Shown piece by piece: positions 10,813-62,650 of a stretch of 64,000 bases of DNA. Under the pieces are notes generated by a model, which saw only the letters and a program-made list of their open reading frames with translations, did not search any database and was not told the DNA's origin. Position 1 is the first letter of the stretch, and every line of letters starts with the position of its first letter. A program made the position numbers and the translations under genes. Source of the stretch: Hemiscyllium ocellatum (taxonomy: Eukaryota); contig NC_083419.1 in assembly GCF_020745735.1 (NCBI RefSeq), positions 27,116,085 to 27,180,084 on the forward strand, in the 5' to 3' direction.

Positions 10813-11005
10813 TCTCTGTACCGTACTTCACCCGGCAGGCTGGTCAAAAAAATGAAAGCCCATGGGATACATGAGAATGTGGCAAGTTAGATCAAAATTT
10901 GATCAATCTTTTGTTTCTTGTCACCTAGCCAATGTTTTGTGAATGAAAAGTAGTTTCCAGCTATGTTCCACAAGGCTAATTGTTGTGGCCTTTGCTGTTT
11001 GTTGT

Positions 11006-14000
11006 ACATAGAACATAGAACATAGAAAAATACAGCGCAGTACAGGCCCTTCAGCCCTCGATGTTGCGCCGATCCAAGCCCACCTAACCTACACTAGCCC
11101 ACTTTCCTCCATATGCCGATCCAATGCCCGTTTAAATGCCCATAAAGAGGGAGAGTCCACCACTGTTACTGGCAGGGCATTCCATGAACTCACGACTCGT
11201 TGAGTAAAGAATCTACCCCTAACATCTGTCCTATACCTACCACCCCTTAATTTAAAGCTATGCCCCCTTGTAATATCTGAGTCCATACGTGGAAAAAGGT
11301 TCTCATGGTCAACCCTATCTAAACCCCTAATCATCTTGTACACCTCTATCAAGTCACCCCTAAACCTTCTTTTCTCCAATGAAAACAGTTCCAAGTGCCT
11401 CAGCCTTTCCTCATACGATCTTCCTACCATACCAGGCAACATCCTGGTAAACCTCCTCTGCACCCGTTCCAGTGTCTCCACATCCTTCCTATAGTATGGC
11501 GACCAAAACTGCACACAATACTCCAGATGCGGCCACACCAGAGTCTTATACAACTGCAACATGACCTCAGGACTCCGGAACTCAATTCCTCTACCAATAA
11601 AAGCCAGTACACCATATGCCTTCTTCACAGCACTATTTACCTGGGTAGCAACTTTCAGAGATCTTTGTAAATGGACACCAAGATCCCTCTGCTCATCCAC
11701 ACTACCAAGTATCCGACCATTAGCCCAGTACTCCATCTTCTTGTTACTCTTACCAAAGTGAATCACTTCACACTTAGCTACATTGAATTCCATTTGCCAC
11801 CTATCTGCCCAGCTCTGCAGCTTATCTATATCCCGCTATAACCTGCCACATCCTTCCTCACTGTCAACAACTCCACCGACTTTCGTATCATCCGCAAACT
11901 TGCTCACCCAACCTTCTAGCCCCTCCTCCAGGTCATTTATAAAAATGACAAACAGCAATGGTCCCAAAACAGATCCTTGCGGAACACTGCTGGTAACTGC
12001 ACTCCAAGATGAACCTTTCCCATCAACTACTACCCTCTGTCTTCTTCCAGCCAGCCAATTCCTAATCCAAACCTCCAACTCACCCTCAATGCCATACCTC
12101 CGTATTTTTTGCAGTAGCCTACCATGGGGAACCTTATCAAACGCCTTACTAAATTCCATATACACCACATCAACCGCTTTACCCTCGTCCACCTCCTTAG
12201 TCACCTTCTCAAAGAATTCAATAAGGTTTGTGAGGCACGACTTGCCCTTCACAAAACCATGCTGACTATCCTTGATCACATTATTCCTATCCAGATGTTC
12301 ATAAATCCTATCCCTTACAATTCTCTCTAAGACTTTGCCCACAACAGAGGTAAGACTCACCGGCCTATAGTTACTAGGGTTATCCCTACTCCCCTTCTTG
12401 AACAAGGGAATTACATTTGCTATCCTCCAGTCTTCTGGCACTATTCCTGTAGACAACGAGGACATAAAAATCAAGGCCAATGGCTCTGCAATCTCCTCCC
12501 TTGCTTCCCAGAGAATCCTAGGATAAATGCCATCAGGCCCAGGGGACTTATCTACATTCACCCTTTCCAGAATTTCCAACACCTCTTCCCTACCTACCTC
12601 AAAGCCATCCATTCTAATTAATTGTGACTCAATATTCACATCAGCAACAATGTCCAGTTCCTGAGTGAATACTGACGAAAAGTATTCATTCAGTGTCTCC
12701 CCAATTTCTTCAGCCTCCACACGCAACTTCCCACTACTATCCTTGACGAGACCTATTCCTACCCTAGTCATCCTTTTATTCTTGACATACCTATAGAAAG
12801 CCTTTGAGTTTTTCCTAATCCTATCAACCAAGGACTTTTCATGTCCCCTCCTTGCTGCTCTTAGCTCTCTCTTTATATCCTTCCTGGCTACCTTATAACT
12901 CTCAATCGCCCCAATTAAACGTTCACGCCTCATCTTTACATAGGCCGCCCTCTTCCCTTTAACAAGGGATTCCAATTCCTTATTAAACCACGGCTCCCTC
13001 ACACATACTCTTTCCTCCCTGCCTGACAGATACATACTTATCAAGGACACTCCGTAGTTGTTCCTTGAACAAGCTCCACATTTCGATTGCACCCTTCCCT
13101 TGAAGCCTACTTTTCCAAGCCATGCATCCTAAGTCATGCCTCACCGCATCATAATTTCCCTGCCCCAGCTATAACTCTTGCCCTGTAGTGTACACTTATC
13201 CCTCTCCATCACTAGAGTAAAAGTCACCGAATTGTGCTCACTGTCCCCAAAGTGCTCACCTACCTCCAATTCTAACACCTGGCCTGGTTCGTTACCCAGA
13301 ACCAAATCCAGTATGGCCTCACCTCTTGTTGGCCTGTCTACATATTGTGTCAGGAAACTCTCCTGCACACATTGGACAAACACCGACCCATCTAACGTAC
13401 TCGAGCTATAGCTTTCCCAGTCAATACCTGGAAAGTTAAAGTCCCCCATAACAACCACCCTATTACTTTCACTCTTCTCCTGAATCATCCTCGCAATCCT
13501 TTCTTCTACGTTTATAGGACTATTAGGAGGCCTGTAGAAAACTCCTAACAGGGTGACCTCACCTTTCCTATTTCTAAGCTCAGCCCAAACGACCTCAGAT
13601 GGCGAGTCTTCATCCATCGTCCTTTCCACTGCTGTAATATTATCTTTGACAAGCAATGCCACATCTCCCCCTCTTTTACCCCCACCTCTGACCCTACTAA
13701 AACATTTAAACCCTGGAACCTGCAACAACCAATCTTGTCCCTGTTCTACCCATGTCTCCGTAATAGCCACAACATCGAACTCCCAAGTACCAACCCACGC
13801 TGCAAGTTCACCTACCTTATTTCGTATACTTCTCGCATTGAAGTACACACACTTCAAGCCACCTTCCTGTTTACAGGCACCCTCCTTAGAGATTGCTGCC
13901 ATGTTCCTAACCTCTCTACACTCCAGGTCCTGCACTCTAAAACTACAGTCTAGGTTCCCATGCCCCTGCAGAGTTAGTTTAAACCCCCCCGAAAGAGCAC

Positions 14001-14532
14001 TAGCAAACCTCTCCCCAAGGATACTGGTGCCCCTCAGGTTCAGGTTTAGACCATCATGTTTATAGAGGTCCCACCTTTCCCAGAAAGAACCCCAGTTATC
14101 CAGAAACTGGAATCCCTCCCTCCTGCACCATCCCTGTAGCCACGCATTTAACTGCTCTCTCTCCCTATTTCTCGACTCTCTATCACGTGGCACGGGTAAC
14201 AAACCAGAGACAACAACTCTATTTGTTCTAACTCTGAGCTTCCAACCTAGCTCCCTGAAAGCCTGCCTAACATCCTCATCCCTCTTCCTACCTATGTCGT
14301 TGGTGCCAATCTGGACCACGACTTTGGGCTGTTCCCCCTCCCCCTCCCCCTTAAGGATCCAGAAAACACGATCAGAGACATCATGTACCCTTGCACCTGG
14401 GAGGCAACATACCAAACGTGAGTCTCTCTCGCCCCCACAAAACCGCCTATCTGTGCCCCGAACTATCGAGTCTCCAATAACTATTGCTCTGCTCTTCTCC
14501 ACCCTTCCCTTCTGAGCAATGGGGATAGGCTC
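11006..14532 (-). mobile_element. Young 5'-truncated CR1 LINE: ORF1 SGNH esterase, ORF2 APE endonuclease + RT, (TATGTTC)n tail; ORF2 broken by a few frameshifts
   Basis: ORFs 13141-14697 (IVIGDSIVRG, IGTNDI, YFNARS, ITETW, GDFN, LDLVL), 11836-13092 ([24 protein letters not shown]) and 11089-11793; tail catagaacatagaacatagaa at about 11007-11027. Confidence 0.97.
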
Positions 14533-15487
14533 ATTTATTGTTTTGGACTTAAATGGAGGAAGTATGAATTGAGAAATTTGCAGATGACAAAAATTGGCCG
14601 GGTAGTTAGTTGACCCCAGAACGATATAAATGGTTTGATTGAGAGGGCAGAAAAGTGGCAAATGAAATTCAATCTGGAAAACTATGAGGTGGTGCATTGG
14701 GAAGGAAAAATCAAAGCTATAGAATATACAATGAACAGCAGGACATTGAGAGGGGTGGGAAAATTAGAGTGCATGTCCATGCAGTCCATACGTAAGGCAG
14801 ATAGACAAGGTGGTAAAGAAAATATATTGTGACAATACTATGGTTTTAAGAGGTGTATTTTGTCCTTTTTTAAATGAAGAAAGTTTGAGACAGAGGTAGT
14901 AAGCAATCTGTTCCAAGCCAATATGGTGAACACCTGGTGAGGCCTATGGTTTTGTTTTAAAGTAGGAACATTGACTAGTATGAATGGGTGGAGTCAGGCT
15001 CTCTGAGAACCAAGGACTTAGTTTAGCTTTCAGTAGTTGTTACTGGTTTTTGGAAACTAGTTGAAAAAGATATCACATCTCTCTCTTTGCTACAGTTAAA
15101 AGCTGGAGTTTTCTCTTTTACCAGAATTGCATGTGAGACAGTCTGTTTATTGAAGCCATGATTTGGAGACGCCGTTGTTGGACTGGGGTGTACTAAGTTT
15201 AAAATCACAACACCAGGTGATAGACCAACAGATTTATTTGGAAGCATTAGCTTTCGGAGCGCTGCTCCTTAATCAGGTGGTTTTAGAGAATAAGATTGTA
15301 AGACACAGAACTTATAGCAAAAGTTTACAGTGTGATGTAACTGAAATTACATATCGAAAAAGACCTGGATTGTTTGTTAAGTCTCTCATCTTTTACAATG
15401 ACCATGTTGGTTTCAGTTCTTTCATCAGTAAATCGCAAAACATTTTTTTAAAGTTACATTCTCAAGAGAATTTTAATAATTGGTGTG

Positions 15488-26352: not shown

Positions 26353-27142
26353 CGCGCCTCCCTTGTCTGCGGGTTTGATGGTGAGGTTGGGATTGGAGCG
26401 GAGGGAGTGGAGGGCTGCACGTTCTGAGGGTGAGATTAGATGAGAAAGCAGAAGGCATGGTTAGTAAGTTTATGGATCACACTATAATCGATGGTATAGT
26501 GGACAGTGAAGAAGGCTACCTAAGGTTACAAAAAGGTCTTGATTAGTAGGGTCAATGGGCTGAGGAGTGGCAAATGGAGTTTAATTTGGATAAATGCAAG
26601 ATATTGCATTTTGGTAAAACAAGCAAGGGCAGGACTTACAGAATTAAAAGTAGGGCCTTGGGCAGTATTATGGAACAGAGAGACCAAGGGGTTCAGGTAC
26701 ATAATCCTTCTTTGAAGTTTGCATCACATGTACATAGGGTGGTTAAGAAGGCATTTAGCATGTTTGCCTTCATTGCTCAGCTCTTTGAGTATAGGAGTTG
26801 GGAAGTTGTTGTACAGGATGTTGGTGTGCAGTCCTGGTCGTTCTGTGATGGGGTGGATGTTATTAAGATAGAGAGGGTTCAGAAAATAATTCACCACAAT
26901 GTTGCCGGGAATGGAAGGTTTCAGTTATAAGGAGAGGCTGGATAGACTGGGTCTTTTCTCACTAGAGCGTAGGAGATTAAGAGGTGACTTTATAGAGGTT
27001 TATAAAATTATGAGGTGCACCATGCCAAGCTACAAATCTTTACACAAACCATGCATTATGAAGGGTATAGATATGGTGAATAGCAGGTATTCATTTTCCC
27101 GAGGGAGGGGGAAATGCAAGACTAGGGGACATATTTTTAAGG

Positions 27143-27381
27143 AGAAAGTGAGGACTGCAGATGCTGGAGATCAGAGCTGAAAATGTGTTGCTGGAAAAGC
27201 ACAGCAGGTCAGGCAGCATCCAAGGAATAGGAGATTCGACGTTTCGGGCATAAGCCCTTCTTCAGGAATGAGGACACTTTCCTCATTCCTGAAGAAGGGC
27301 TTATGCCCAAAACGTCGAATCTCCTGTTCCTTGGATGCTGCCTGACTTGCTGTGCTTTTCCAGCAACACATTTTCAGCAGC
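27143..27381. mobile_element. Palindromic Penelope-derived element with hammerhead motifs on both strands, 15-bp TSD
   Basis: Near-perfect inverted arms around the loop acacttt; TSD gacatatttttaagg at 27128-27142 and 27382-27396. Confidence 0.9.
27234..27269 (-). ncRNA. Minimal hammerhead ribozyme motif (intact core)
   Basis: attc-CTGAAGA-a-gggc(ttat)gccc-GAAA-CG-TC/gaat; the plus-strand twin at 27285-27320 has GAAA changed to AAAA. Confidence 0.7.
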
Positions 27382-27731
27382 GACATATTTTTAAGGTCAG
27401 AGGAGAAAGAATTAAAAAAGACATGTGGGCAATTTTTGTTTTACACAGAGTGTGCTCCGTGTGTGGAATGAACTTCCAGGTGAAGTGGTGAACATAGGTA
27501 TAGTTACAATGTTTAAAAGACATTGGATAAGCACATGAATAAGAAATATTTGGACGGATACAGGCCAAGCACAGGCAGGTGGGACTAGTTTAGTTTGGGA
27601 TTACGGTTGGCATGAACTGGTTGGACTTAAGGGTCTGTTTCCATGCTGTATCACTCTATAACTTGAGGATACTTTTAGGCGATAAATTCAGAAACTTTGA
27701 TTCACCTGCATTTTGGTTACCAATATTTGGT

Positions 27732-54265: not shown

Positions 54266-54488
54266 ACATAAAGACATCGTGCATTGCCTCGAGTTTTGGA
54301 GACGCCAGTGTTGAACTAGGGTCTACAAAGTTAAAAATCACACAACATCAGGTTATAGTCCAACAGGTTTATTTGGAAGCACTTACTTTTGGAGTGCTGC
54401 TCCTTCATCAGGTGATTCAAGCACTCCGAAAGCTGGTGCTTCCAAATAAACCTGTTGGACTAGAACGTGGTGTTGTGTGATTTTTAAC
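54266..54488. mobile_element. Penelope-derived inverted-repeat element (family of 15155-16812)
   Basis: Arms AAAATCACACAAC..CAGGTTATAGTCCAACAGG / CCTGTTGGACTA...GTTGTGTGATTTT; TSD tttatgaaa(a/g)gt at 54254-54265 and 54489-54500. Confidence 0.8.
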
Positions 54489-57400
54489 TTTATGAAAGGT
54501 GGTATCAATAAGGGAGGAGATGATAAGCAAGTATAAGTTAGTGTAGGACAAGATGCGAGGAGCAGCATTATGGACAAGTTGTAATTCATGGTAAGTGGAA
54601 AAAAATGGGAAACAATCAAGGAAAGTATCAGAATAGCCATATTTGAGGCTGACAAAGCCTTACATAAGAATTTGGAGGAGGAATGGACACAGGTGATAGA
54701 GGTCAAAACTTATCATCAGTTGTGGACCTGTACAGGATTCCAAGACTGCCAACAATCTGGTTTAGCTTGATAATATGCCTGGGAAGACAAAGTTCAATAA
54801 CAAGGAAATGGAGATGGCCTTTGACAACAATTTTGATCATCCCGATCTTGAGCTGCAAACAGTGGCAACGCATTTGCGATTTGACACCAGAAAACCAGTT
54901 TAACAGCATCATTATGGGATCAAAAATGGGAGTGAAGATCAGTCAGGTATCTCAAGTATGCATAAAAGCTGACTCTGTAGGTAAGGATGAGGATACATTA
55001 AGGATAGATCATTCAGGGAACTTGATGCTGACAGCACCAGAGAGGTAAGATAAACTATTGCCACAGATGCTCTGTAAAACTGGAGTAATTTCCATCCTGA
55101 GTTCCTATATTTTATAGCTTCCCAGTTGGGGCTACTTTTAGGCCTGTCTTAGTAATTCTTATCTGCGCAAGCAAAGTCTTATCTGGCTACATTCAGTTGT
55201 ATATATCTTAGCTTAACATAAGGTTCACTTTTGGCATCCAATAAATTGTGCACACAGCTATAAGAATTTTAATGAGAACCAGTTTGAATTAGTCATAGAA
55301 CTTTAAGTTTTATTTTCAATGGTTACAATTACAGTTTGCAAATTGCTTCTATAGCTTCTTTCATGATATCAATCTCCAATAACATGACTGTGAATAAATT
55401 ATTGTCCTTGTTTTTCACATTAAGCAATTCTTTAAATTTCCATAACTTACAGGTAGTAAGATGGCAATTTAAAAAAACTTATGAGGGAGTAAAACAAAAA
55501 AAAATTGAGGAAGAGTGCACATCCTACGATCAGATGGTTTTGTAGAGTTTTGTGGATAAATATCCAGTGACCACCTACTCTGCAAATCTGTAAAGAAGTT
55601 CAAGCATCAGGCTATAACATCTGGCAAGTTCTTGTGGATTATAAATTTCTTTTGGAAGTGAAAACCATATCCTGCATCAGGTCTCAGTGGGGTTTAATGC
55701 TGTCAGAATACACTGGGTTTGTTTTGATCTGCATGCAGTAACACATATAGCATTCAGTTCTCACTAATAACATCCCAGTGTCTGGTGTGCACAAATCCAA
55801 AGACTTCTAATTAAAGGTTAGCTTTAACCAAATACAGATCCACAGTAAAACACATGCAAGTTATTAACTCTGTTAAGGAATTGCAAGTTCTGAGTGTGAA
55901 GGGTACTACAGAATACAGAAGCTTTGTAGTATTCATCAATCTGAAGATCAACAGCACATTTTAACTGAACTTCTGTGTCAGCACATGCTTTGTACGTACA
56001 GTGAATATAAACAATGTGTTCAAATGCGTAACAAATTGCAAGATTATTTGTTCTATTTTAGAATATTTTGTTCATTTGTCAATTACTTCTAATGAATGAT
56101 GAACAAGAATGCTACTAATGAATGCATTCCAATTTCATTTCTCCTCCTCCAAAAATCTCATTCAGAACTGCTAATGAGTCCAAGAGAGAGAAAAATGAAG
56201 CTACAATGTAATTGCTTGCAGAACAACTACATATTTGAAATAGTAAACATCTGAGTCCACGTGACAAAGCGCAAGTTCATGATGAAAACCAGTTCATCTA
56301 GTTCCGGATCTTTACTGCACAGAGGCAATGAAAGTTCCATTGTTTGGTCCTGCTTTTCGTTTCACTGAGTCTCTCCCACACATTTCCAATAACAAACTCC
56401 ATAAAACTGCTTGTGGAGGTGTAGAGAATGAGTGGGTTTGAAAATTCTGCAGGCACCAAGAAAAGCTACAACACTCTCCAAGTGTCTTAGAGAGGATTTG
56501 TATGGGGTAATTTCAGGGTGTGGCTGGATATCAAGTTGGTGAAGTTTATTGAGGAAAAACTTAAGAGATGACTTATGGATTAGTCAGCAATTTGCCTTAC
56601 TTTGATCTCCAGACTCTTCAATGACTAACTGCATATTAACCAACTTGGCAACATTTTTAACCTCTTTAGTACTCAAGTCATCTGAACAAAATGTCCAATA
56701 GGATATAGATCATGAAATTGTGATTGAATAAAATCCACTGTTATTGGCTGTCCTGTAGTCAATTTTCTCATTTGAAGAATCAGACTACAAGAAAAACAAA
56801 ACAGATTGATTGCAATCTTCCAAAAGTTTGATCAGCATTTAGTGGACTTGCCTATGTCTACTAATTTATTTTTCCCATGCTAAGTTATTACTCTTGCCCC
56901 TTTCACCCTTCTATTCAATGCACTAGAGAATCATGTGCTGTTCTATAGGTACAATACTCTGCTGCAATGTCTTGGTAGAAATTCTTCATCCTTGAGCCTA
57001 CTCAGATTATCCAATTATGACAGCCATCCCAAATTAGTTCAGCCTTGTCCTAGCCTAATGTAAACTAGAGTTTTCAAAAAAGGCTACCAACTAGTGAACA
57101 GAAATTTTGGGTGATCTGCCCCCTTCTTTCACAGTACCAAGATCCATAATGCAAAAATGAGCAGCACTCCCACAATTATTCTGGTGGAATGAGTTTATGT
57201 CAGTAAAAGAAATAGGGTCATTGAATCTCAGATTTTCCAATTTTAACACATGGTACATTTATTATTGAAACTCTTGACTGGTTTACATGAATTACTCCAC
57301 TGCATAAATCGATGAACATTGGTCAAGGAAACACAAAGCATTGTCTCCAATGCAGTATACTAAACAAAAGATTATAACATTTCCCAAAACATATCTTTAA

Positions 57401-57689: not shown

Positions 57690-58304
57690 TTTGAAACGGT
57701 TTGCAATCTTGGACTCATTGGAGGTTGAGATGAACTTCCAGCTACACACATCCACTACTGCGACAGTCTATGTCCACAGAATTTGCCTTGCTCCACTCAC
57801 CCACTACTAAAAATTTCATTGATGGCTTCGCTACCTGTTCACTAGACCACTTGAATCAATTCCTGTTCAGCCTCTCATGTTCTACCCTCCATAAACATGT
57901 TGCCATCCAAAACTCATGCCCATGTTTTAATTTGCGCAAAAACATGTTCATCCATTATCCCTACTCTCAGTATCCTAAATTGGCTCCTAGCGAATCAAAC
58001 CTCAACTCTAAAATGCTCAGCCTTATTTTTAAATCCCTCAATAGTTTGATCCAGCCTCACACTTTCCAAGATGTAGATCTGATTCTCTAATTTTGATTGT
58101 GAGCATCTCCGATTTTAGTTGCTCCACCATGGTGACCATGTCTTCAGCTACCTAGGTCCTAAGCTCTGGAATTCCTTCCACCTCCCATTTCTCCACCTCC
58201 CTTTTCTATTTTCAGACATTCCTTAAGATTCAACTCATTGACCAAGTTTTTTGTCAACTGCTTTACTATCTCATTTGGATCAGAATCAAATTCTATTTAA
58301 TGCT
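57690..58304 (+). mobile_element. L2-clade LINE 3' fragment
   Basis: F.TCSLDHLN..L..L..STLHK....QNS...IFKSL and L2 3'UTR-like GGTCCTAAGCTCTGGAATTCC. Confidence 0.6.
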
Positions 58305-58413
58305 GTTGACAAAAAACTTGGTCAATGAGTTGAATCTTAAGGAATGTCTGAAAATAGAAAAGGGAGGTGGAGAAATGGGAGGTGGAAGGAATTCCAGAGC
58401 TTAGGACCTAGGT
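58150..58413. repeat. Perfect 109-bp inverted repeat (58150-58258 / 58305-58413)
   Basis: Base-by-base reverse complement, 46-nt spacer. Confidence 0.95.
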
Positions 58414-58484
58414 GGGCTTGGATCGGCGCAACATCGAGGGCCGAAGGGCCTGTACTGCACTGTATTTTTCTATGTTCTATGTTC
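58409..58484 (+). mobile_element. 76-nt extreme 3' end of the young CR1 family
   Basis: Nearly identical to the reverse complement of about 11012-11087; TATGTTC tail. Confidence 0.9.
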
Positions 58485-60870: not shown

Positions 60871-62650
60871 AAGGAAGGGAGAAAAGCCACCGATACAGCC
60901 AGGTAGATGGGTTACCTCCAGGAAAAGTAGGAAGGATAGGCAGGTTGAGCAGGAGTATTCTGTGGCTATCGCATTTCAAACAAGTACGCTGTTTTGGAAA
61001 ATGAAAGGGGTAATGGACTCTCAGGGGAATGTAGCATGAACAGCCAAGTTTCAGGTATCGAGACTGGCTCTAATGTAAAGGGGTGTGACAGGGGACTCTC
61101 TAGTCAGAGACACAGACAGATGTTTCTGCAGCCAGCAGTGAAATATCAAAATGATGTATTGCCTACCTGGTGACAGGATCAAGGATACCTCAGATTGGGT
61201 GCAGAATATTCTCAAAAGGGGAGAGGGGCCAGCAGTAGGTCATTGTACTGTAGCTCAACAAGTAATCCAGGTATTACTGACCTTGAGGACCTCCTTTTTA
61301 AATTTCTGCCTAACTTTTTATATTCTCTGTTCAGAATCTCATCCTTTTCCCTTCCTGTGTCATTGGTTCCAATGTGTACATAGAACATAGAACATAGAAC
61401 ATAGAAGGATACAGCGCAGTACAGGCCCTTCGGCCCTCGATGTTGCGCCGACCGAATCCTACCTAACCTATACTAGCCCAATAACTTCCAAATGCCTATC
61501 CAATGCCCGCTTAAATGACCATAAAGAAGGAGAGTTCACCACTGATACGGGCAGGGCATTCCATGAACTCACAACCCGCTGTGTGAAGAATCTACCCCTA
61601 ACATCTGTCCTATACCTACCACCCCTTAATTTAAAGCTATGACCGCTAATGGAGTCAGGTGTTACTAGGGGACATAGCTTTAAATTAAGGGGTGGTAGGT
61701 ATAGGACAGATGTTAGGGGTAGATTCTTCACACAGCGGGTTGTGAGTTCATGGAATGCCCTGCCCGTATCAGTGGTGAACTCTCCTTCTTTATGGTCATT
61801 TAAGCGGGCATTGGATAGGCATTTGGAAGTTATTGGGCTAGTATAGGTTAGGTAGGATTCGGTCGGCGCAACATCGAGGGCCGAAGGGCCTGTACTGCGC
61901 TGTATCCTTCTATGTTCTATGTTCTATGTTCTATGTACACATTGGAACCAATGACACAGGAAGGGAAAAGGATGAGATTCTGAACAGAGAATATAAAAAG
62001 TTAGGCAGAAATTTAAAAAGGAGGTCCTCAAGGTCAGTAATACCTGGATTACTTGTTGAGCTACAGGATAGTGAGGATAGGATAGATCAGATGAATGTGT
62101 GGCTGAGGAGTTGATGCAGGGGAGAAGAGTTCACAATTTTGGATCATTGGAATGTCTTCTGTGATAGAAGTGACCTGTAAAAGAAGGACAGATTGCACCT
62201 GAATTGGAAGGGGACTAAAATACTGGCAGGGAGATTTGCTAGAGTTGCTTGGGAGAATTTAAACTAGTAAGATGGGAGAGTGGGACCCAGGGAAAGAGTG
62301 AGGAAAGAGATTAATTTGAGACTGGTACAGTTGGGAAAAGGAGCAAGTTGAACAGTCAGGGCAGGAAGGAACAAAGCAGAGAACACAATAGGAATGATAA
62401 ATTAAACTGCATTTACTTCAATGCAAGAGGCCTAACAGGGAAGGCAGATGAACTCAAGGCATGGTTAGGAACATGTGACTGGGATATCACAGCAATTCCA
62501 TAAATGTGGCTCAGGGATAGATAGGACTGGTAGCTTAATGTTCCAGGATACAAATACTACAGGAAGAATAGAAAGGGAGGCAAGAGAGAAAGGGGAGTGA
62601 TGTTTTTGATAAGGAATAGTATTACTGCTGTATTTAGGGAGGATTCTTAC
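60871..62650 (+). mobile_element. Older CR1 5' region (ORF1 esterase into ORF2 APE endonuclease), interrupted by a fold-back insertion
   Basis: WVTSRK, SNKYAVLEN, CLPG.RIKD, HIGTND, DRLHLN, then LNCIYFNARGL, WDITAI. Confidence 0.88.
61248..62066. repeat. Perfect 394-bp-arm palindrome (61248-61641 / 61673-62066) made of a young CR1 3' end plus about 130 bp of flank
   Basis: Arms checked as reverse complements; the ORFs at 61468-61731(-) and 61649-61846(+) end in identical peptides. Confidence 0.95.

Follow-up and report, generated by a model that had tools for sequence, protein, structure and literature searches.

A perfect 819-bp palindrome at a young CR1-like insertion in Hemiscyllium ocellatum, probably formed by snap-back synthesis during retrotransposition

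Introduction

How could the insertion of a 5'-truncated LINE leave behind a perfect palindrome that takes in both the element and the host DNA beside it? This question is raised by positions 61248-62066 of a 64,000-nucleotide stretch of the Hemiscyllium ocellatum genome (contig NC_083419.1), which was analysed as a whole and which we call the window; all coordinates refer to it. Second-strand synthesis and 5' joining are the least understood part of the LINE cycle, and snap-back junctions have so far come mainly from engineered R2 systems and from L1-expressing or cancer cells. A preliminary description of the window proposed that the cDNA of a CR1 insertion had snapped back, copied itself and continued into the attached genomic DNA before joining the upstream target end. 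We consider here which features of the locus bear on this proposal, and how it compares with a later DNA-level event, an assembly artefact, twin priming and two independent insertions.

Results

The palindrome is 819 bp long and comprises two perfect 394-nt arms around a 31-nt loop, just as had been described. An inverted-repeat finder places the arms at 61240-61648 and 61666-62074 (409 nt, 99% complementary), and base-by-base comparison about the symmetry centre gives 0 mismatches between 61248-61641 and 61673-62066 (394 nt per arm), leaving at the centre a 31-nt loop (61642-61672) that is mostly unpaired. Folded as single-stranded DNA, the palindrome forms a single hairpin with an energy of -521 kcal/mol, compared to -95 +/- 5 for shuffled sequences (z = -84), and this fold is not attributable to chance. 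Rfam searches of the whole window gave no match at gathering thresholds, and a ribozyme or structured RNA was therefore rejected as an explanation for this palindrome and for the others in the window.

Direct reading upholds the order of parts given in the preliminary description, namely TGTAC, inverted flank, inverted CR1 3' end, loop, CR1 with its TATGTTC tail, TGTAC, and flank. The upstream host DNA (60900-61243, plus strand), which would be the "reciprocal" target end, corresponds on the basis of its translation and of paralogous contigs to the ORF1 esterase region of a decayed older CR1-like LINE. It ends in the left copy of a target-site duplication (TSD), TGTAC at 61244-61248, which was read directly and is present as a single pentamer in paralogs. 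The left arm that follows repeats the flank, TGTAC, the tail and the CR1 segment without a change, in reverse-complement orientation. Of this arm, 61249-61380 (minus strand) holds the downstream flank (61939-62065) in inverted form together with an inverted TSD (61376-61380) and matches the reverse complement of 61934-62066 at 100% identity, and 61381-61641 (minus strand) is the inverted CR1 3' end including tail repeats, with 0 mismatches to the reverse complement of 61673-61933. Position 61248 also pairs with 62066, so that the left junction may contain a 1-nt overlap. The forward, 5'-truncated CR1 3' end occupies 61642-61933 (plus strand, 292 nt) and carries the ORF2 C-terminus, the 3' UTR and a (CTATGTT)n tail; its 5'-most 31 nt constitute the loop (61642-61672, plus strand), as judged from other family copies and from alignment to a related copy elsewhere in the window. 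Direct reading places the right TSD, TGTAC, at 61934-61938, and next to it, at 61939-62066, comes the downstream host flank in its original place, about 128 nt on the plus strand, from which the inverted copy was taken. A host-frame ORF (61926-62114) crosses the arm end at 62066 without interruption, and because the host ORF1 reading thus runs on past this point we take the right arm to be the original, in place, and the left arm to be the copy.

The host of the insertion is, from its translation, an older, decayed CR1-like element. Translated across the empty site it reads ...CLPGDRIKD...(V)IVHIGTND, which is of the esterase type found in ORF1, and an endonuclease start lies further on, at about 62402. 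In Pfam searches the host ORF1 piece gave a sub-threshold match only, to Lipase_GDSL_2 (E 0.14), and the 33-aa start of the host APE gave no match.

This anatomy bears directly on twin priming and on two independent head-to-head CR1 insertions, either of which would also place an inverted beside a forward LINE segment with TSDs around them. The inverted segment is the identical CR1 stretch, not a more 5' part of the RNA, and both arms end at the same base. Moreover, the inverted part carries 128 nt of the flank of this particular host copy at 100% identity, and this flank is in no RNA template. Both explanations were rejected on these grounds, the chance that either is correct being negligible, and the contrast with L1 twin priming drawn in the preliminary description is correct.

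The inserted family is best read as a CR1-like LINE on the basis of domain content, C-terminal motif and tail. The insert retains the C-terminus of ORF2 in an ORF at 61649-61846 (...RGHSFKLRGGRYRTDVRGRFFTQRVVSSWNALP... / ...SGVTRGHSFKLRGGRYRTDVRGRFFTQRVVSSWNALP...), for which Pfam gave no match to the 65-aa segment. Its tail consists of three to four CTATGTT units from about 61908 to 61933 and is microsatellite-like, not poly(A); the same type of tail is present in window copies at 11006 and 58484. A related near-full-length copy lies at 11000-14800 on the minus strand. Its 3' end is 89.3% identical to the 3' 281 nt of the insert, and the inverted CR1 arm (61381-61641) is 89.7% identical to this copy. 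ORFs in the 11000-14800 copy match Exo_endo_phos (1.5e-17) and RVT_1 (3.9e-28), and the copy also gives a Lipase_GDSL_2 match (E 9.2e-12), the truncated insert itself being without ORF1. An esterase-bearing ORF1 is not unusual in this group, since Kapitonov and Jurka reportedly noted in 2003 an SGNH/GDSL esterase domain in ORF1 of many CR1-group elements. The 11000-14800 copy is CR1-like in layout, with ORFs of 518, 418 and 234 aa in which a GDSL esterase is fused to APE and followed by RT, and it continues with the conserved C-terminus and a (CTATGTT)n tail. There are only a few interruptions in this copy, and the family therefore looks recently active.

The insertion and the duplication both appear to be very recent, because the arms are undiverged and the insert has approximately the majority sequence of its relatives. 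The arms differ at 0 of 394 nt, 9 CpGs included, and there is one listed position (61471) at which the insert departs from the majority letter of contigs that are at least 95% alike. Gene conversion could account for part of the zero divergence between the arms.

We next consider the target site, for which Logan contigs of the source organism were compared with the locus at 95% likeness. The hallmarks of TPRT are present at the insert: a TSD, an intact tail, 5' truncation at 61642, and an empty site represented by at least three paralogous host copies. In a contig from run X22 the insert is skipped and 61220 is joined to 61934 (...AGTAAGTCAT before TGTACACATT); a contig from run X1 has the same joint (...GATGGTTGT before TGTACACATT), and a further contig joins 61220 to 61959 (...GTCGTTATACACATT). 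In the 20-30 nt next to the joint all of these contigs depart from the sequence of the locus, and they are therefore assigned to paralogs; no exact empty allele or orthologous empty site is present among the joints of the contigs compared. The paralogous host copies without insert carry TGTAC, or a close variant, once, which shows that TGTAC is a true target-site duplication. Its size is at least AC and at most TGTAC, given that TGT could equally belong to the tail repeat. We infer the empty-site sequence of the locus from these paralogs, and the single TGTAC, or close variant, in each of them confirms the earlier proposal that the host originally read gtcattgtac-acattgg (...GTCATTGTACACATTGG).

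Could the palindrome be an artefact, introduced when a chimeric fold-back long read was taken up in assembly? Such reads are known to give palindromes, and the inner junction (61641|61642) is known from the assembly alone: none of the contigs listed at 95% or 100% likeness bridges it, because high-copy CR1 words, with depths of hundreds of thousands, dominate 61600-61700. The outer junctions were followed in contigs, not raw reads, of runs from two studies, P1 (sample S1) and P10 (samples S10-S13, which may be from non-independent individuals). An exact 80-nt unitig of run X19 (S10), 61198-61277, bridges the left junction between host and inverted flank. In addition, a 61-nt query over this junction finds 3/3 sampled words in 8 runs of the two studies, comprising four runs of S1, X19 and X25 (S10), X20 (S11) and X24 (S13); among the runs listed, the words occur in no other organism. 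The preliminary description had allowed that chimeric fold-back reads might be the sole source of the structure, a concern that is answered by the presence of the left outer junction in contigs of two studies and at least four samples. Among 84-87% of the contigs of X1 and X22 there is no exact contig over 61226-61243; other runs of S1 hold the junction words.

The way in which unitigs break at the two arm ends also speaks against an artefact. In 4/4 runs compared (X1, X19, X20, X22) the arm unitig 61248-61309, whose sequence is also that of 62005-62066, ends precisely where the arm does, and the unitigs that leave the arm begin exactly k-1 inside it (62037; 61277). Exact unitigs spanning 62037-62108/110 in X1, X19 and X20 carry the right flank past the arm end. 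Depth in the arm is about twice that of neighbouring single-copy sequence in X1 (88 vs 35), X19 (12.3 vs 5-8) and X20 (12.1 vs 4-8), and the palindrome lies mid-contig with its TSD and an exact host continuation. The two-way branch at the arm ends, together with the left junction in independent runs, therefore indicates that the structure is no long-read chimera. An assembly artefact is essentially excluded for the outer junction, and we regard it as very improbable for the palindrome as a whole.

Two further observations were made in these contigs. In X22 (S12) the arm unitig 61248-61309 has a depth of 40.6 compared to about 30 in single-copy neighbours, and sample S12 might be heterozygous for the palindrome, contig depths being noisy. 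Some contigs of other copies in X19 and X20 turn back inside the CR1 3' region (61567-61737), for example from 61737 to 61586 with AGTA between and from 61728 to 61567 with T between; their depth is about 27, compared to about 6 for single copy. These turning contigs hint that further CR1-internal inverted junctions, whose apex lies on the 3' side, exist elsewhere in the genome.

The position of the turn can be read from other members of the family. Contigs of other copies match the window from 61642, 61643 or 61645 on, and diverge upstream of this point into ...GAACCTTTT; the copy at 11000-14800 agrees with a forward CR1 identity of the loop. Because the other copies match from there and diverge upstream, the whole loop is RNA-templated forward CR1 truncated at 61642, and because the loop is forward CR1 up to 61642, the turn falls at the exact truncation point. 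The first seven nucleotides, 61642-61648, which form the putative snap-back primer, pair at 5/7 positions with 61666-61672, so that 17 nt at the apex stay unpaired. Read on the bottom strand, the 3' end of the cDNA, 5'-TAGCGGT-3', faces 3'-ATCCCCT-5' seventeen nt back. Three pairs come first, followed by a C:C mismatch, two G:C pairs and T:T at the very end (the mismatches being at 61642 and 61645), and the perfect arm starts right beyond. The binomial chance of at least 5/7 pairs is about 0.013, for a 7-nt frame that was chosen after the fact. In addition, the terminal T:T mismatch makes the proposed primer less than ideal for priming.

A second CR1-associated palindrome is present in the window, as the preliminary description had pointed out. 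Its perfect 109-nt arms (58150-58258 and 58305-58413) are separated by a 46-nt spacer and make it the second-best palindrome of the window; it adjoins the 5' end of a young CR1 tail of 76 nt (97% identical to the 11000-14800 copy) via a TAGGT microhomology. The inverted duplication is real. Here it is the upstream (reciprocal) target end, not the downstream one, that is folded back, and no clear TSD was seen at 58150-58484. In the apex (58259-58304), TAATGCT lies on TGCTTTA with 5/7 inner nucleotides paired, in the form of 3 pairs, a T:T mismatch, 2 G:C pairs and a terminal T:T mismatch. The order of pairs and mismatches is therefore the same in both apexes (61642-61672 and 58259-58304), with three pairs before the inner mismatch, two G/C pairs after it and T:T at the end. 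This common pattern may be a coincidence, or it may be the signature of an enzyme that extends folded-back ends.

The window has other palindromes as well (27176-27378, 54327-54491 and others), but these represent copies of hairpin repeats of a dispersed kind, and they are unattached to CR1 ends. The hairpin element at 27143-27381 is 239 nt long, its 99-nt arms (97% complementary) being 5 nt apart; it gives no Rfam match and sits in the ORF2 C-terminal region of another CR1-like copy; it is bordered by a 15-bp direct repeat, GACATATTTTTAAGG (27128-27142 and 27382-27396). The palindrome at 54327-54491 is of the dispersed type, with 72-nt arms (90%) and a 21-nt spacer. CTGATGA...GAAA-like motifs occur on one of its strands, there is no Rfam match at gathering score, and a hammerhead in this repeat is not established.

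The two CR1-associated cases together bear on the possibility that a normal CR1 insertion was followed by a separate DNA-level event that duplicated CR1 and flank in inverted orientation, either a template switch in replication or the repair, by fold-back, of a break unconnected with the insertion. Ordinary breaks are a well-known source of such duplications (PMC11724301; see also work on DSB-end remodelling, 10.1101/2024.12.14.628481), and a template switch back to the adjacent base would likewise lose no nucleotides. A later event must, however, have departed exactly from the first CR1 base, 61642, and the same coincidence with a CR1 5' end is seen at 58413/58414 in the second palindrome. 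The 64 kb contain 3 young CR1 5' ends, and on that basis the probability that both coincidences arose by chance is roughly estimated at <1e-5. Moreover, the near-undiverged insert leaves little time between the insertion and a later duplication. We therefore consider a later event to be distinctly unlikely, if less so than an artefact.

Discussion

The reading that we prefer, with a probability of roughly 0.75, is that self-primed snap-back synthesis took place at a TPRT intermediate and ran 128 nt into the flank before 5' joining. A young CR1-like LINE would thus have retrotransposed once, and the error that gave the palindrome would have arisen at the second-strand or 5'-joining step. In outline, a nick in the bottom strand of the old CR1 copy would provide the 3' OH from which RT is primed on the (UAUGUUC)n tail of the RNA, and the cDNA would stop at 61642 after 292 nt. 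Its free 3' end would fold back via the imperfect 7-nt microhomology, leaving the 17-nt apex, and would be extended with the cDNA as its own template, so that the CR1 sense strand and tail are remade. Because the cDNA hangs covalently from the downstream target strand, synthesis could then continue into the genomic flank; extension over about 128 nt of the bottom strand with which the cDNA is continuous would copy the TSD as well, and would need either strand displacement or a resected top strand. Finally, the 3' end of the fold-back strand would be end-joined to the upstream target with an overlap of 0-1 nt (the C at 61248 being assignable to either side) and the gap filled, yielding L-TGTAC-[flank' - tail' - CR1' - loop - CR1 - tail]-TGTAC-flank, where L is the upstream host.

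The fold-back mechanism of the preliminary description fits every junction, including the original right arm, the forward-CR1 loop, the turn at a microhomology and the TSD. What does not stand is its novelty, as discussed below. We infer that the fold-back happened during integration rather than just after it from its exact coincidence with the CR1 5' end. The same product would also be expected if a hairpin-capped end had been ligated and then opened 394 nt off-centre, giving a giant tract similar to P nucleotides.

As to the polymerase that made the fold-back strand, the sequence fits the CR1 RT and a host repair polymerase alike; we slightly favour the CR1 RT, since LINE RTs copy DNA and displace strands. 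On a DNA template the R2 RT, for example, can displace a strand of either DNA or RNA (PMC4117753), and a route through host resection would fit the DSB-end remodelling model proposed for L1 (10.1101/2024.12.14.628481).

The class of mechanism is already described for both R2 and L1. A "snap-back" category of 5' junction has been defined for TPRT by avian R2 proteins in human cells (PRINT; PMC11371274), in which, as here, the upstream target ends up joined to antisense insert sequence. At the present locus the sequence of 61673-62065 recurs, reverse-complemented, as the left arm (61249-61641), and the upstream host is joined to inverted flank. The R2 junctions were observed as sequencing reads from cultured human cells, with engineered avian R2 proteins and templates and rDNA as target (PMC11371274), whereas the palindrome studied here is a natural CR1-clade insertion in a genome, has 394-nt arms, includes 128 nt of copied flank, and retains its TSD.

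For L1, insertions with inverted duplications of the flank have been attributed to a resected 3' end that self-anneals at a 2-bp microhomology (Mendez-Dorantes et al., 10.1101/2024.12.14.628481), and inversions of L1 plus flank on the primary RT end, as well as foldbacks that carry TPRT insertions, are reported in the same work. These cases resemble ours in that a 3' overhang generated by TPRT self-anneals at a short microhomology and primes synthesis. The L1 inverted duplications, however, are on the reciprocal end (10.1101/2024.12.14.628481), which is like the palindrome at 58150 and unlike that at 61248-62066. The L1 foldbacks of the primary RT end are chromosome-scale rearrangements in cancer or cell clones (10.1101/2024.12.14.628481); at 61248-62066, by contrast, the primary RT end would have folded and been locally re-joined; the palindrome is small and clean, and the genome that carries it is a normal one.

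Twin priming of L1 resembles our locus in that an inverted segment lies 5' of a 5'-truncated LINE, with a single pair of TSDs enclosing both. It differs in that a different, more 5' part of the RNA is copied from the second target end, with no long duplication of the same segment and no flank; overlaps at the inversion points of twin-primed insertions were reportedly found by Ostertag and Kazazian in 2001 to be short only.

Within the L2/CR1 clade, the available part of a study of zebrafish ZfL2 elements describes TSDs of about 5 bp, 5' joining of an annealing type, and extra 5' nucleotides derived from the flank (PMC4245944). The 5-bp TSD seen here matches that measured for ZfL2-1 in this part of the study. 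The extra nucleotides of ZfL2 are described there as short filler (PMC4245944), whereas those at our locus amount to 128 nt, are inverted, and are continuous with an inverted copy of the element. A limited literature search, which returned only papers on Penelope and on parvoviruses, gave no report of natural germline LINE palindromes formed by self-priming, and hairpins or inverted duplications are unmentioned in PMC13526784 and PMC2912911.

What is added here is a natural, very young, contig-supported case from the CR1 clade, in which the primary RT end appears to have been folded back and cleanly re-joined, and in which the turn-back point, the microhomology, the TSD and the 128 nt of copied flank are all legible at the locus. 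Inverted duplication is seen on 2/3 young CR1 copies in the 64-kb window, and the suggestion of the preliminary description that the family may routinely seed palindromes draws on these two cases. It is conceivable, if doubtful in our estimation, that this young CR1 family snaps back unusually often and with a stereotyped apex, and that self-priming by the CR1 RT is a regular and major source of palindromes. As a single case, the palindrome is a well-documented instance of a known process, and it suggests that the same accident occurs in nature and leaves heritable perfect palindromes. Were such events frequent in the family, cruciform-prone DNA and 400-bp dsRNA hairpins would regularly arise from them in introns and in other repeats.
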